Shown here: positions 47,776-62,100 of the stretch, piece after piece
How the letters are laid out: every line of letters starts with the position of its first letter
Position numbering within the stretch: position 1 is the first letter of the stretch
NCBI GenBank assembly: GCA_904063045.1
Contig: CAJFCJ010000021.1
Span: 876,367 to 940,366, forward strand
DNA from: Dimorphilus gyrociliatus
Taxonomy: Eukaryota > Animalia > Annelida
Direction of reading: 5' to 3'
DNA: 64,000 bases
Position numbers and translations under genes: made by a program
The notes under the pieces: model-generated
Database searches by the model: none
The model's input: only the letters and a program-made list of their open reading frames with translations
Told to the model about the DNA's origin: nothing

Positions 47776-50700
47776 TCAAGTAAATACAGCTGTTTCCAAA
47801 GTTCTCTTAACAAAATATCCATACGCCTCAATGTCCGTAGTCGTATTTTCACCATTCAATATTCCATATTCAGCCGGAATTATAAAAAATGAACAAACGC
47901 TTTTCTTGCGCTAAAATAGAAATCAAAACGGTTGTATTGGCAATATATAATTGTGGTTGTAGTTATTGTCCTAAATTTTACGTGAATAAAGAGATAAAAC
48001 CTCAAAATATATCATCGATTCGTTAATATTTCCACTTAGTGTAAATCCATAAGAATGACAATGCTTTAATGCTACTATGCAATCTTTTAAGCAACCAACA
48101 AACGACTTTATCTCGAATTTCATCATCTCACCACCTAAACTATGAAGAAACTTCTCTGCATGCCCAGTTGCCAAATGATTATCATAAAAGCTATTTATAA
48201 ATTCTAAATCTATTTAACAAAATAAAAAGCAACCCTTGACACAAGCAATTGTTAAATCTACAGAATAAAGATGAAAAGAGGGGAAACAATTGTTTTACAT
48301 ACTTTCCTTTTCAACTCTGGCTATTAAATTTTCCTTTCCTTCATTTCTATATCAAAAAAAAGTCTTTGAATTAATTAATATCTCATTAGCCGATTACCGA
48401 CTAATTGCTAACAAACAACATATACGGTCTCTACTTACTCTCTAACAATCTCTTCTAAACGTTTCTTCCGTTTCAGTTTTAACATTTCACCAAAGTAGTA
48501 AAAATATGGGTTAATAATTGAATTAATCGGAGCAAACACAATCACAATCCAAGTATAGGCTTCGTTACTAAAATATAATTCAACGAATAAAGATGTTATA
48601 CCTAAAATTGAAAACAATTAACAACAACCCAAATTCAAAAAACTAACAATAAACTACAATAATTTACCCATCAGAGATATCGGAAGCCAACATAATACAT
48701 TTGATAATGTTATCCAATAAATAGATTGCGAAATAAATACTTTTTCTTTATTTATACTAATAAAACTCCTATTTCGCTGATTAATTAATTTTATGACGCA
48801 AATGTACACTATTGAGTTAATTATTGCTATCAAAAACATTAGTATTCCATAAATGGCGAATGAATACAACGTATCCTCATCTTTATTGCTCCGGACTTGA
48901 AGTTTAAAACATATTGGCGAATTGTTTAAAAAGTTCTGAAAAGTTGGTAAAACAAACACCAATCCATTGTTATAGAAAACATCTTTATCGTTAACAATTA
49001 AACAGTTGACGTTACCTCGTAGAACAAGATAGGAAAAATAGCCAGCGCTAAACTCACACACAGTAAGCTAATGGTACTTGCGCTCACAACTTTAATACCT
49101 AAACGAGGATTCAAAGGAAATTTGATGGCGTAGAATCTTTCGAAACTTATACACAGAAGATTCAACGACGAGTATAATACAGAAAAGTTCATCATTGAAC
49201 CCAAAAATTTACAAAACAATCCCGAAGTCCACGCTTGTTCGTACTCGAAAAATTTCCCTCTGAAATAGACGTCCGCCGAACCAACAATCATTAAGTACAA
49301 ACAAGTAATTAGGTCGGCAAAAGACATTGAAATGTAAAAGAAATGCGTAGGTCTCCTGAAATGGAATATCCTGAACAAAAGCGATAAAGAATTACCCACA
49401 ATTCCACAAATTGCGTAAAGCCATAGAATCACTTTCAGAGCATTGGACGCCAAAAGATCGGAACAAGTGTTGAATAGAGAAGTGGAAGGAAAACACGATT
49501 CGATAGATTTCAAATACTTCCACGCAAAGCAACACAAAATGAAATATTCGCTTTTCACTATCTTTACACTTTTCAAATTTGAAATGAGAGTTTTCACGTT
49601 TTCCATTGGAAATTTCGTTTCCGACAAATCCAACTTATGGAGGCGATTCTCCCTCAGAAACCAATTGTCCATCTGCTTTATTGCGCAACCTCTAAGCAAA
49701 AGTACAACCAACTTAGCCAAATTGGCGAATGCGTCTATCGACAGAGAATTTATCTTGGTAAAAGATAAATCAAAGTATCTGACATTCGAGAAATATTTCC
49801 CGCTCAACAATTCAGTTAGAGGATTAAACGACAAATCCAAATGTTGCAAAAGAACATTCGGAATTTTCATAACGTTTTTCATAGATTCAAGTTTGTTTCG
49901 TTTCAAATTCAACAAAACCAAATTTGGCGCGTCAAAGTGAGCGATGAAATCTCGTATATTGCAATTTTGTATTTGAATACTCGCCAGACTGTTCGATTGG
50001 AAATTGCCGTTCAATTGTCTGTAATTTTCAATCAATAGTTGTTTAGTTCCTCTCAGATGATTAACGAGAGATAAATGAAGAGTTTGATATTGATTGGAGG
50101 ATGTGCAAGAGAGATTATAGGCGGGTGACAATGAACAATGGGGCGGATAATCGTTAGTGCGATTAGGACAGAAGACTTCGTCATTAGCATATTTGCAATT
50201 GATAATACCGTCACACACTTTTGTCATCTTTAAATATAACAATTGATTTTTACATTTGAAAAATCCGCTTGGTCGAAAATCATCTTTATTCGAAGAAAGA
50301 ATGCAAATGAATACAACTTGGCCAATGTGTTGCCGACTACAGATTATTACCGCAATGTAGCTCGTCTTCATTATACCAACAATGATTGATACCGTCGCAA
50401 ACCTGTTCGATTGAAATACAGTATTTCGCAGTTTGGCATAGAAATTCGCCTTTATCGCATGATTGTTTTTCACAGTTTGCCAAATCTGAAAGTGGATAAA
50501 GTTTTGCGTTGGAATTTCCATTGGAATTATATTTCAAATTGCATGTTTTTTGATATTTTGAACTATGATAAAAGGAATTGAAATTTTAATAACTCGGTAA
50601 TGATTAAATTATTACCGTAATTGATAAGTTTGTTTCAAGATACCGTAACAACTGTCCCAGTCCTCATCTTCGAAATCAAGACAGTTGTAGACCATATTAC

Positions 50701-56139: not shown

Positions 56140-59100
56140 TCATTTCTTTGAATTTTCGATAGATATCTTTTTCTGCAATAAAAGACGAATAAGCAGTCCG
56201 AAAGAGTAAATATCCTTCTTGTTGCTGATGTCGTTTGAACGCGTTAAATATTTTGGAATCACGTAGAATTTTTTAGATTTATTTCCAATTGTCTAGAAAT
56301 GTAAAGCGATTTCATCAATATATTAATAAAATCTCAACGTTTTCAAGGGAAAGAGAAAAAGAGAAAGTTGACAGAGAATCGTCTAACTTCGTAAAGTAAA
56401 AGGAAAGTTTTCAAAGATATTTTAAAAATACTTTACTCGGAAAAAAATTGTCGTTTCGTTTAAATTTCCATTCAATGAAAATCCGTGTTGATGGCAAAAA
56501 TTTAACGCAGTTAGACATTGTTTAACGAACTTGTAGTATGTCAAATTTCTATAAAATTTCCAATCGAAACCAAATGTACAAAGGTAATTCTTTATATTCT
56601 CGCTACTTAAATGATTCGCTCCCATATTCTTCATAAACGTTATATCTACAAAAATAAATTAATCATCAATAACTGGCAATAACCCTCATTTGTATAAAAC
56701 ACTTTCCCTTTTGCTTCAAAGAGAACCACAAGTCAACCTCAATCTGTTTTCTACGACAACGAATGACAAATGCTCGACATATCGTTTCAGTCAGTTACTT
56801 GGCCTACCTTCTCTGCAATTTCTTACGTATCTTCTCTTTCTTCAGATGTATTGCTTCTTCAAAATTGTACATCCATGGATTCAGAACCGAATTAATCGGT
56901 GCCAAAGCAATAACAATTGAAACGTAAATGTTGTTACTATAACTTACCTTTAAAAGTAAAGAAAGAATACCTGAAACAAAAATTTTCTACTTCTTATTCC
57001 GAAGTAATTTGCGTTATGGTGAATGTATGAAATTGGAAATTTTAAGAAATCTTCCCTCAACACTTTTGTAAGGATTTCGCGAAATGTCGAAAACTCTTAG
57101 TTTTTCATCTACTTCCTAGGAAAGGCTGACAGAAAAATTCTACTACTAGACTAATCACAACTGAAAACATATCAGAATTTCGTCAGACTTTTCTGCTAAA
57201 AACAACATATATATTAGACGTCTTCAAGAAATCCTTCAACAAAACAGTTCATTACAAAAACATTCCAATAACACACATTATTCGTAACGTTTCAAAAATC
57301 ATAATCTACCTAACACCGATATTGGAAGCCAACATAATACATTTGATAATGTTATCCAATAAAAAGAATGAGAAACGGATAATTTCTCATTCTTTGAACT
57401 AATAGATTTCGTATTTCGTTCACTAATTAATTTTATAACGCAAATGTACACTGCTGAATTAATTATTGCTATCAAAAACATTAATATTCCATAAATGGCG
57501 AATGAATACAACGTATCCTCCTCATCTTTATTGCTCCGGATTTGAAGTTTAAAACATATTGGCGAATTGTTTAAAGAGTTCTGAAAAGTTGGTATAACAA
57601 ACACCAATCCATTGTTATAGAAAACATCTTTATCGTTAACAATTAAACAGTTGACGTTACCTCGTAGAACAAGATAGGAAAAATAGCCAGCGCCAAACTC
57701 ACACACAGTAAGCTAATGGTACTTGCGCTCACAACTTTAATACCTAAACGAGGATTCAAAGGAAATTTGATGGCGTAGAATCTTTCGAAACTTATACACA
57801 GAAGATTCAACGACGAGTATAATACAGAAAAGTTCATCATTGAACCCAAAAATTTACAAAACAATCCCGAAGTCCACGCTTGTTCGTACTCGAAAAATTT
57901 CCCTCTGAAATAGACGTCCGCCGAACCAACAATCATTAAGTACAAACAAGTAATTAGGTCGGCAAAAGACATTGAAATGTAAAAGAAATGTGTAGGTCTC
58001 CTGAAATGGAATATCCTGAACAAAAGCGATAAAGAATTACCCACAATTCCACAAATTGCGTAAAGCCATAGAATCACTTTCAGAGCATTGGACGCCAAAA
58101 TATCGGAACAAGTGTTGAATAGAGAAGTGGAAGGAAAACACGATTCGATAGATTTCAAATACTTCCACGCAAAGCAACACAAAATGAAATATTCGCTTTT
58201 CACTATCTTTACACTTTTCAAATTTGAAATGAGAGTTTTCACGTTTTCCATTGGAAATTTCGTTTCCGACAAATCCAACTTATGGAGGCGATTCTCCCTC
58301 AGAAACCAATTGTCCATCTGCTTTATTGCGCAACCTCTAAGTAAAAGTACAACCAACTTAGCCAAATTGGCGAATGCGTCTATCGACAGAGAATTTATCT
58401 TGGTAAAAGATAAATCAAAGTATCTGACATTCGAGAAATATTTCCCGCTCAACAATTCAGTTAGAGGATTAAACGACAAATCCAAATGTTGCAAAAGAAC
58501 ATTCGGAATTTTCATAACGTTTTTCATAGATTCAAGTTTGTTTCGTTTCAAATTCAACAAAACCAAATTTGGCGCGTCAAAGTGAGCGATGAAATCTCGT
58601 ATATTGCAATTTTGTATTTGAATACTCGCCAGACTGTTCGATTGGAAATTGCCGTTCAATTGTCTGTAATTTTCAATCAATAGTTGTTTCGTTCCTCTCA
58701 GATGATTAACGAGAGATAAATGAAGAGTTTGATATTGATTGGAGGATGTGCAAGAGAGATTATAGGCGGGCGACAATGAACAATGGGGCGGATAATCGTT
58801 AGTGCGATTAGGACAGAAGACTTCGTCATTAGCATATTTGCAATTGATAATACCGTCACACACTTTTGTCATCTTTAAATATAACAATTGATTTTTACAT
58901 TTGAAAAATCCGCTTGGTCGAAAATCATCTTTATTCGAAGAAAGAATGCAAATGAATACAACTTGGCCAATGTGTTGCCGACTACAGATTATTACCGCAA
59001 TGTAGCTCGTCTTCATTATACCAACAATGATTGATACCGTCGCAAACCTGTTCGATTGAAATACAGTATTTCGCAGTTTGGCACAGAAATTCCCCTATAT

Positions 59101-62100
59101 CGCATGATTGTTTTTGGCAGTTTTGCAGCTGAGAAAATGGCTTTCGAATGTGCGTAATTGGTACGTTGTTCGAGTAGAATTTTAATTTGCATATTGTGTC
59201 ATTTGTATATCCAATATTCTTTTCCAAAATAGGACTGTTAAATGTACTATTTACCGAATGTTTTTATTATATTGTGCTAAATTGTCTACATATATTGTGT
59301 TTCGGATTTAGTTAGGATTCGTACGCAAACGAGGAAATCTTCATCCGAACCGTCTAAGCAATCATATATAAAGTCACACTTGATTTTTAAGCTTTCACAT
59401 TGATTATTGCAATATATTTGATGTTTATGGTTGCATTCTTTAAATAGGAAAAGAATAGCTGATGTTAGTGAGTTTTGTTTGGAAAATTTTGGCGAGTTGT
59501 CATACTTTTGTGTAGATTATGGTTGATTGGAAATTTTTCATTTGCTAAGCAGTTTTCGTCACTTTTATCGAAGCAATTAATATCGATATTGCAATGCTGA
59601 GCGTGTGCTATGCATTGGCCATTATAACAGGGGCTGTAGAATGATTAGATTTTTCATTATTATCGTTAATGTCATTGGAAAACTATTTGATAAATACAGT
59701 TTGTCTTCAGAGCATTTATCCGTCTCTTATTAATGAAATGACACACGCAGAGTTGAATAAACTATTTATCAATCTCCTATTATATAAAGCTAACCGCAAT
59801 TTGTTTCGTCAGATTTATCAACGCAGTCGGTTCGATAGTTGCAAATATATTGCAGTGGAATAGTTTGATTTGTATGTAGGCAGTAGAATTTTGTTTCAAT
59901 ACTGGGACAATCGAGTTCATCTTCTCCTGCATAGCAATCGTTTTCACCGTCGCAAACGTCCACGTAGCTTATACACATTTCGTCCTTTCTACATAGAAAA
60001 GTGGAATTCGGACAAATTACAGGTGTTTTCATATAAAAATTCCAGTTTTCCAGAGAAAACGCTTGAAATTCTATTGGTATCCGGATTTCAGTTGGAATAA
60101 GGAAAGTATATATAATTGACTGTTTAATACAAAGAATGATATTGAGAAGAAATCACCATGAGATTTTTGGCAAAAGAATGGAATGTTCAAATTAAGATGA
60201 CAATTGGCATAAGTTCTTCTGTATATTTTTATTGTATGTATGAAAATTAGTGTCCTGTAGACTTCCAGCACACTGCATTTATTTTTCAGCACAATCGTGT
60301 TATAACTGTTATAAAATGCTTCAAACATATACTGATTTTCCACTCTCGAAGAGGCTGTGTCAAGCTAAACGAAGATAAACGTTGAAAAAACAAACAAACA
60401 GATAACTACGAGATGGGCCGTTTGATTAAAGAAAACTATACTAGGTTATTCAAATGAATTCCCGACCAGAAGAACGAAGGCATATTCGTCGGTGTTGTTA
60501 AAACACTCAAACCATTCGGCGTATTGTTTTCTTTTAGTACTGTTTGTAAACAATTAATTAATGTTTCGGAAGGCGCTAATTAGCTAATTCCGCTGTAAAA
60601 AAACAATTGAACTCGACTCGTTATTGTACTGATATTAACTTGAAGGTATTTTTAACGTTGATCGCTTGCTTTGAAGCATAACATTGTTGTAATTTTCCAA
60701 AATTAATGATTCTTCGCTTGGATAGTCGAAATAATAGAATTGAAGAAGAAGAATATAGCGAAAAATTTCAGTGCTAAAATTTAAAGGTTCATCAATTATC
60801 GTTAAATTTTTCTTTAAGCATTCTTTTTCCATATCCGGTATTGACATTTTCATCTTTGGTTGAAAAGTATAGTAACAAGTATTGAATATTCTATGGGAAT
60901 TTTCGTGTGGACATTCTAATAAAAAATCGTAAGTCCTTATGATAGAGAAGAGAGTGAGAGCGAGAGACTAAGGTAGATAGATAGATAGATTGATCAATCA
61001 ATCTATTTCACTCTGAACAAACCTTGCAATTTAGTGGATTTTGTGCACTTTATCTGAAATATTGTGTACATTTCCTCACTTTCAAATCTGGGCCTTGAAT
61101 AACAACCATTTATGTCTATTCTATACTATATATACTTTTAGCATATAAACTCACAGAGTTGTCAAATTAGTTTCAAATGGACTCAGCAATTGACAGTCTT
61201 TGACAAGTTGACTGCTTCTTTTACACGACAAGTCGAATAAATGGGAAAAGTCAAAGTGAACTATTGACCTGTCTCTCAACGGAATCATTGTTCCGTGTAA
61301 AAATCCAAAATGTTTACATATCAAATCCAATTCGAACTGTTGCAACGAAATCGTAGAAATACCAAGCCAAGCAGTCAGATTAAAATACTGAATATAACCC
61401 TGATATTCATCCAATATATCCTTAGTATCATTTGCGTATAGATATCGATTGTTAATTGCGCTATACAACCTATATTCTATAAGGAGGAGTGAAAAGCAAA
61501 AATATTAATAAATACATTGCGCTGTATTCTATCAATTAGAAATCACCAACTCTGAAATTGTTCATCTTCTTCGCAAGATACATTGAAAGATACCGTCCCC
61601 TGAATTGAAGCCGTCATCCTACAGACGAAGGACGATTCCTTATCTTTTATACAATTCGATATAAACGATAGATTAGTCGCATTTCTCTGAAACGTTTAAA
61701 TTTGACAGCTCTCTAAGTCAAAATTGTATACAGTATATTGGGTATAATCTTACAGATAGTCGAATTTCATACTCCTGGAAGGATAATCCGCAAAAAAGTT
61801 TATTATTCTGCAAATAAAAATCAAAGATTTAATGTAAAAACGTGAATTTCTACAAGAATAAACAAGCGTATATTAACCTTTTCATTTTCGAATGACGATA
61901 GAGTAAAGTATTTCGGCTCGAGAATCATCGATATACTTTTACAGATTTTCATTCCAATCATTATTTTTGCAGCTTTCGTCAACAATTCTGGTCTTGAAAG
62001 AATTTTAAATGACATTTCCTGAAATTTTCTATTAAACACAAGCGGATGGTGTGAATTTATGTTGAGTATTTGATATTCATCTAATTCGATAATAGGAAAT

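Follow-up and report, generated by a model that had tools for sequence, protein, structure and literature searches.

A probable kinase-derived tail domain in a family of LGR/GRL101-type receptors of Dimorphilus gyrociliatus

The stretch of DNA analysed here (the window) comprises 64,000 nucleotides (nt) of the annelid Dimorphilus gyrociliatus (contig CAJFCJ010000021.1, positions 876,367 to 940,366 of the forward strand); it has a G+C content of 32% and is eukaryotic, with short GT..AG introns. Two adjacent genes of the same kind lie on its minus strand, referred to here as gene B and paralog A. Gene B extends at least from 61154 to 56065 and encodes a GPCR (G protein-coupled receptor) with LDL-receptor class A (LDLa) modules, leucine-rich repeats (LRR) and a rhodopsin-type bundle of seven transmembrane segments (TM1-7, or 7TM). 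Downstream of its TM7 exon lie small exons that are predicted to encode a cytoplasmic domain of kinase descent, and it is this tail that is described below. Only one public run, X1, covers the gene B region; its type is unrecorded, and it consists of contigs. These contigs omit 11 short segments of gene B, 10 of which have GT..AG ends on the gene's strand, and the run is therefore evidently RNA-derived. The features of gene B, numbered from the first letter of the window and given in the order of transcription, are as follows.

59790-60032 and 58982-59227: upstream open reading frames (ORFs) of gene B with LDLa modules (Ldl_recept_a, 61.8 and 30.3 bits in Pfam)
57661-58928, minus strand: large exon with one LDLa module, the LRR block and TM1-4; joints 58928/58996 and 57580/57661
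57310-57580, minus strand: TM5-6 exon, covering 7tm_1 profile positions 134-221; phase-1 donor G/GTAGAT
56971-57309, minus strand: TM6-TM7 intron of 339 nt, GT..AG, with donor GTAGAT and acceptor TTTCAG
56808-56970, minus strand: TM7 exon (163 nt) that includes NPWMY and a basic stretch and ends at a phase-2 donor; joint 56808/56750
56707-56750, minus strand: mini-exon (linker of ~14 residues), 44 nt, entered in phase 2 and left in phase 1; a 44-letter contig piece between two joints
56646-56706, minus strand: intron after the mini-exon, with a GA..AG boundary (the plus strand ends in CT..TC at joint 56645/56707); donor GAAAGT
56437-56645, minus strand: first kinase-like exon, 209 nt and 69 residues, with hinge/αD, αE (..CLTALNFCH..) and a catalytic-loop remnant that has FSLNG for HRD
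56339-56386, minus strand: 'optional' exon of an earlier prediction, skipped in the RNA contig, which joins 56437 to 56292
56140-56292, minus strand: second kinase-like exon, 50 residues and a TGA stop, with an APE-like ..VIPKY.. and αF ..KKDIYSFGLLIRLLLQKK..; the 3' untranslated region reaches at least to 56065

In RNA, gene B's TM7 exon is joined by splicing to the exons that follow it. A 1027-nt X1 contig, which aligns with zero mismatches, contains the joints 56808/56750, 56707/56645 and 56437/56292 and extends to 56065. A sequence-only reading of this locus had described the TM7 exon as 163 nt at 56970-56808, free of stops and ending at a phase-2 donor, and this is borne out by the sequence and by the joint 56808/56750. 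The check that it had proposed, the order of junctions from TM7 to mini-exon to first tail exon, is seen in the contig with the end of the mini-exon moved to 56707: the second exon had been placed at 56750-56701 (50 nt), and the RNA contig gives 44 nt, 56750-56707. The exons predicted at 56645-56437 and 56292-56140 are joined in the contig, which skips the one offered as optional at 56386-56339. The peptide strings quoted in that reading are correct.

The TM7 exon is a single open frame that reads ..APINSVLNPWMY..KKLQR, also written ..APINSVLNPWMYNFEEAIHLKKEKIRKKLQR, up to the donor AG/GTAGGC. Both the 44-nt and the 50-nt version of the mini-exon preserve the frame, and with the 44-nt version the tail reads ..KKLQR-R-KQIEVDLWFSLKQK-D-ITFMKNMG... 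If the TM7 donor is left unspliced, a TAG follows immediately at 56806-56804. This stop is uninformative either way, because all phase-2 GTAG and GTAA donors share such a stop. By simple arithmetic, the chance of an open stretch of 69 codons at 32% G+C is ~0.004.

The receptor portion of gene B is recognized by Pfam, with 44.1 bits for 7tm_1 in the large exon (cut-off 30.5) and 32.5 bits for LRR_8 in the same exon. The 7TM region contains both an ERF motif (DRY-type) and NPWMY. The exons for the LDLa modules, the LRR block and the 7TM region are linked by GT..AG joints in the RNA contigs, which gives gene B the architecture of the LGR/GRL101 type.

The exons of gene B were searched singly, and searches that span both tail exons used family members in which the two exons are fused in one ORF (L032, L015, L010 and L054). 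Separate alignments were used: A2 of the first tail exon (28 sequences), A3 of the last exon, and A4 of nine fused-exon members. The last exon of gene B matches Pfam Pkinase at positions 161-199 of the profile (E = 0.015, 15.2 bits). When the A2 profile was compared with the PDB, 110 matches were obtained at E ≤ 10, and each of the 60 that were listed has the kinase fold. CaMKII scores best (E = 0.0075), aligned over the end of αD and over αE up to the residues before HRD. The A3 profile found PERK only (E = 1.3), over the segment between the APE-type turn and the beginning of αF. The A4 profile gave 37 matches at E ≤ 0.001 among 1.84 billion representative proteins, nearly all of them short ORF-type predictions of the tail family itself. 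Among the matches of this HMMER search is one true kinase, P0031 (E = 4.4e-4), with 135 bits for Pkinase. An hhalign comparison of the tail family with P0031 resulted in 96% probability over 127 columns, approximately from β4/β5 to αF, and language-model features of the tail likewise point to kinases. P0031 (251 residues) is itself degenerate, with I-N-R-E-L for HRDL and G-Y-F-G for DFG.

A structural model was obtained with AlphaFold2 for the member L032:1270-1623 together with 27 aligned sequences, with a predicted local distance difference test score (pLDDT) of 92.5 and a predicted template modelling score (pTM) of 0.85. The model consists of a short helix, a long helix (residues 35-52), two short strands, and a long C-terminal helix (residues 91-117). 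With this model, Foldseek found no match in the PDB at E ≤ 0.001; all of the rows listed are kinase-domain proteins, with a best E of 8e-3 and query template modelling scores (TM-scores) of 0.5-0.6. In a VIA-align comparison with 48,161 representative chains, the neighbours included Rad53 (Z 10.7, 112 residues aligned at 3.5 Å), RNase L (10.5), TBK1 (9.6) and PEAK3 (9.6), and nearly all of the top 50 chains are kinases or pseudokinases. A shape search of the ESM Atlas gave TM-scores of 0.71-0.74 to kinase clusters. These profile comparisons and the predicted fold support descent of the tail from a kinase.

The family alignments point to the parts of a kinase that have been kept. These are a hydrophobic αE with an invariant terminal histidine (..ALNFCH..), a nearly invariant D-I-x-S-F-G that opens αF, and an APE-like ..F-x-I-P.. 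turn ~12 residues before it. The αE histidine and the αF aspartate of kinases belong to the structural core and are not catalytic. The αE histidine, the αF pattern D-x-W/Y-S-x-G and the kinase fold, which mark that core in the kinase superfamily, are all found in the tail. The N-lobe, with its glycine-rich loop, VAIK lysine and αC glutamate, is absent; the 14-residue mini-exon alone precedes the module, and both the model and the alignments with kinases begin approximately at the hinge. HRD is absent from the tail, where F-S-L-N-G stands in gene B, F-T-L-S-G in paralog A, and S-L-N-G in the family consensus. DFG is absent from the tail family, in which the segment before the APE-like turn is shortened, and the catalytic-loop asparagine is not among its conserved positions. 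Helices αG-I are absent as well, and the module stops ~10 residues past αF. The tail family falls below the curated Pfam thresholds for Pkinase (PF00069) and PK_Tyr_Ser-Thr (PF07714). Since the N-lobe, HRD and DFG are missing, ATP binding at the usual site and phosphotransfer would be precluded. As judged from the alignments and the model, the tail domain appears to be a half-kinase remnant of ~118 residues, from approximately the hinge to αF, and is neither a full C-lobe nor a complete pseudokinase.

The likeness to αE and the catalytic loop, and to αF, that the sequence-only reading had pointed out was recovered here by the A2 matches on αE and by those of the last exon, on Pkinase 161-199 and on the PERK segment from APE to αF. 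Its remark that HRD, DFG and a full N-lobe are missing agrees with the alignments and with the 14-residue linker. It had also proposed a receptor that carries its own pseudokinase or scaffold module. The fusion stands, on the evidence of the RNA contig, paralog A and dozens of loci, and so does the kinase derivation; the extent has to be revised, to a half-kinase remnant that falls short of an entire C-lobe and of an entire pseudokinase.

The same tail is present in many copies in the genome. Its own assembly (77.9 Mb, 349 contigs) was searched with each of the two tail exons of gene B, which gave 63 and 55 matches, and a profile of the first tail exon gave at least 146 matches at E ≤ 0.001, few of them with internal stops. 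In nearly all loci with adequate upstream flank, the tail exons lie 3' of exons for LRR/TM1-4, TM5-6 and TM7 in the same orientation. A candidate 44-nt exon, with AG before it, G[T/A] after it and the correct phase, separates TM7 from the tail in 21 of 24 distinct loci; candidates of other lengths from 38 to 51 nt are found in 4-12 of the same loci. The ratio of nonsynonymous to synonymous substitution rates (dN/dS) on the tail exons is 0.15-0.55 in seven closer paralog pairs. The order LDLa/LRR/TM1-4, TM5-6, TM7 and tail is also seen in a second organism with a G+C content of ~21% (L061:1-2457, a Logan contig of SRR23372228; also L062 and L063), in which both kinase-like exons are fused in one ORF of 110 residues. 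Because this organism shows an equal gene order, the family extends past the D. gyrociliatus genome. No long tail-bearing receptor from another phylum was found in the A4 search of 1.84 billion representative proteins, the profile for which was built from fast-evolving copies.

Most of the matches to the first tail exon are situated on small contigs (C34 to C322), several on each and some in opposite orientation (L019, two copies). Such clustering is suggestive of tandem arrays where assembly is difficult. One locus, L018:472-1761 (G000:C109), contains a single ORF of 430 residues that runs from LDLa/LRR and the first TM helices directly into tail-exon sequence, without TM3-7; it may be a family copy that is chimeric or has undergone an internal deletion.

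Paralog A has the same tail layout as gene B. The ORFs 5' of it are likewise LDL-receptor class A modules. Its tail and the tract that it shares with gene B are located as follows.

47776-48601, minus strand: paralog A tail, with the TM7 exon at 48601-48439 (163 nt), the mini-exon at 48346-48303 (44 nt, GTATGT donor), the first kinase-like exon at 48209-48001 (209 nt) and the last exon at 47910-47776 (44 residues and a stop)
57301-59123 in gene B against 48659-50478 in paralog A: near-identical tract of ~1.8 kb, 97.4% DNA identity including introns (blastn)

The lengths of the TM7 exon, the mini-exon and the first kinase-like exon (163, 44 and 209 nt) are equal in the two genes, and the intron phases are 2, 1 and 0 in both. 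Protein identity between them is 99.8% for the ORF of the large exon, 84% for TM5-6, 43% for TM7 and 30% for the first kinase-like exon (the last two by tblastn). The near-identical tract ends exactly at the TM6 donor, and the sequence beyond it has strongly diverged. Since a tract that is 97.4% identical, introns included, is flanked by strongly diverged sequence, it looks like the product of a recent gene conversion between old paralogs. An X1 contig has a loose end at 57318, which spells the spliced TM6/TM7 junction of paralog A.

The explanation that we favour, with a probability of roughly 70%, is that gene B and paralog A belong to a family of at least 146 LDLa-LRR rhodopsin-type GPCRs of the LGR/GRL101 kind, whose tail is a kinase-derived half-domain and probably a docking module. 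In this explanation the chain would pass from helix 7 through a short basic stretch and the 44-nt mini-exon into a folded domain of ~118 residues. The domain would have retained the region near the hinge, αD, αE, a catalytic-loop remnant, a short hairpin, the APE-like turn and αF. It would no longer have the N-lobe, which holds the ATP site, nor αG-I; a conserved S-L-N-G would stand where the HRD aspartate had been, and DFG would have disappeared along with most of the activation segment. The tail would then be a non-catalytic protein-binding module attached to the receptor, and by analogy with the KIND domain of SPIRE it most likely acts in docking or as a scaffold. It may dock a signalling partner or mediate pairing of receptors. 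The candidate contact surfaces are the αE and αF faces that normally lie under αG-I, together with a conserved basic R-K-x-L-Q-K-K/R at the end of αF, and these may contact a partner, another receptor or the membrane.

Several results weigh against this explanation. The sole RNA contig over gene B is unbroken across 56808-57353 and keeps the 339-nt TM6-TM7 intron, which contains an in-frame stop at 57301-57299 when it is read through. Because the contig retains this stop-bearing intron, it does not show a single mRNA for TM1-7 together with the tail in gene B. The mini-exon has a GA donor and not GT, whereas the other ten joints are GT..AG. Single sequences lie under the Pkinase cut-off (15.2 against 31.7 bits), and a Pkinase match at E ≤ 1 is obtained for only 1 of 9, 2 of 26 and 1 of 28 family members. 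The top E-values in the PDB and Foldseek searches, at ~0.01, are indecisive alone. The fold was modelled on L032, which is ~30-35% identical to gene B over the two exons, and the scaffold role is one that we infer. The retained intron favours an account in which the family architecture is real but gene B is decaying or poorly spliced: the intron is kept, the receptor is cut after TM6, and no tail is made from this gene. We consider this unlikely, although several observations speak for it. No joint is listed for the TM6-TM7 intron among the X1 contigs; the intron is several-fold longer than the gap of ~50-150 nt between TM5-6 and TM7 elsewhere in the family; the donors are GTAGAT at TM6 and GA at the mini-exon; and the tract resembling paralog A ends exactly at the TM6 donor. 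Yet all exons of gene B are open and contain the conserved residues of the family, and the three introns downstream of the retained one are spliced in that same contig. Moreover, assembled contigs keep one path and drop variants, and a spliced form may exist.

The scores under the thresholds would also fit a lineage-specific small α/β domain whose likeness to kinases arose by convergence or reflects the pull of a common fold. The Pfam scores are far under threshold, Foldseek is without a match at E ≤ 0.001, and VIA-align's own guidance notes that models with no clear relative commonly reach a best Z of 7-8. Such a coincidence is improbable in view of the two separate exons, which match two successive segments of a kinase, correctly ordered and spaced. 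Kinases make up all 60 of the PDB profile matches listed and nearly the whole of the top 50 structural neighbours, the Z scores of 10.5-10.7 span 105-112 of the 118 residues, and a kinase was reached at E = 4.4e-4 among 1.8 billion proteins. That the downstream exons form a separate small gene, or are non-coding passengers of duplications, has very little to commend it, even though an ATG lies near the start of the first kinase-like exon of gene B (MKNMG..) and database searches with the module returned stand-alone short ORF predictions alone. The junctions from TM7 to the tail are observed, the corresponding exon of paralog A lacks an ATG near its start, the phases (2, 1, 0) and the 44-nt linker exon are conserved, dN/dS is below 1, and the short ORFs in the databases are products of intron-blind calling. 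Taken together, paralog A, the copies, the gene order, the 44-nt exon, dN/dS and the second organism exclude both a chance ORF and a separate downstream gene. It would be equally surprising if the tail were catalytic after all, for example as a split kinase that pairs in trans with a separate N-lobe-like protein. Nothing in its favour was found here. The exposed αE and αF faces would require some partner, but the HRD aspartate, DFG and the catalytic-loop asparagine are missing at conserved positions, and only a 14-residue linker fits before the domain.

If the tail is indeed a kinase-derived docking module, it differs from what is usual in GPCRs, whose tails are mostly short, disordered, and substrates for kinases and arrestins. 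A folded module of the kinase type that is fixed to a rhodopsin-class receptor and conserved in more than 100 paralogs suggests another way of coupling a 7TM region to the cytoplasm. More speculatively, and with doubt on our part, the ~150 receptors could be an unrecognized class of animal receptors that have a docking domain of the kinase fold built in and use it, in addition to G proteins and arrestins or in their place, to signal, to be sorted or to be paired, with a repertoire expanded like those of chemosensory or immune receptor families. The tail may also represent a natural minimal kinase core, composed of αE, αF and the loop between them and apparently folding alone, which is relevant to pseudokinase evolution and to protein design. 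In the public protein collections searched, the module is present in short orphan ORFs only. These result from intron-blind gene calling on genomic contigs, which overlooks the three small tail exons.

In its extracellular and membrane portions, gene B resembles the LGR type C/GRL101 receptors, with LDLa, LRR and a rhodopsin-type 7TM region (Ldl_recept_a, LRR_8 and 7tm_1). A word search with the large exon of gene B gave 3 matches, and the nearest named relatives are gastropod GRL101-like proteins and a coelacanth relaxin receptor 1, at 23-25% identity. When the 7TM region of a gastropod relative served as the query, the word search yielded 815 GRL101-like proteins, and the module is absent from all 120 of these that were retrieved. 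In total, 121 gastropod GRL101-like and related proteins were retrieved; they differ from the family described here in their short tails, with a median of ~37 residues after NPxxY, and none of them has a Pkinase match in Pfam or a match to the tail profiles. Weak A2 matches at residues ~690-776 of proteins of 1100 residues were dismissed as chance, since they are N-terminal to the 7TM region. The expansion to at least 146 copies is a further difference from LGR type C/GRL101, and a paper that discusses GRL101 mentions no kinase-like tail (PMC8286064).

Pseudokinases such as RNase L, PEAK3, IRAK3 and the kinase-homology domain of receptor guanylyl cyclases resemble the tail in having a kinase fold without catalysis, and the first three are among the best structural neighbours of the tail model. 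Such pseudokinases have both lobes complete, and nucleotide binding persists in many of them; the tail, in contrast, is without an N-lobe and without αG-I. The best functional analogy is with the KIND domain of SPIRE, a kinase-derived, non-catalytic partial domain for protein binding. KIND retains the whole C-lobe, roughly 200 residues, whereas the tail module has ~118 and stops after αF. KIND was not among the Pfam families matched at E ≤ 1 in 63 tail-family sequences, and we know of no KIND domain on a 7TM receptor. In SPIRE, the KIND domain binds the FSI motif of formin (PMC11231147).

The overall layout of a 7TM region followed by a C-terminal kinase-fold domain is shared with the GPCR-TKL/K and GPCR-TK proteins of choanoflagellates and sponges and with the GPCR-bigrams of oomycetes and amoebozoans. 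None of these GPCR-kinase fusions has been functionally characterized; GPCR-TKs were found in sponges and in no other animal lineage, and no other GPCR family clustered with the 7TM regions of the fusions from choanoflagellates (PMC12716839). The fusions have complete kinase domains that Pfam recognizes, on other 7TM families. Gene B, in contrast, encodes an animal LGR with a rhodopsin-class 7tm_1 region, and its kinase part is shortened, below threshold and without catalytic motifs. A description of an LGR with a kinase-like or pseudokinase tail was not found in open-access papers and preprints, an absence that is not proof. The architecture, itself undescribed in the literature searched, relates to known kinds, the GPCR-kinase fusions on the one hand and KIND-like modules on the other.

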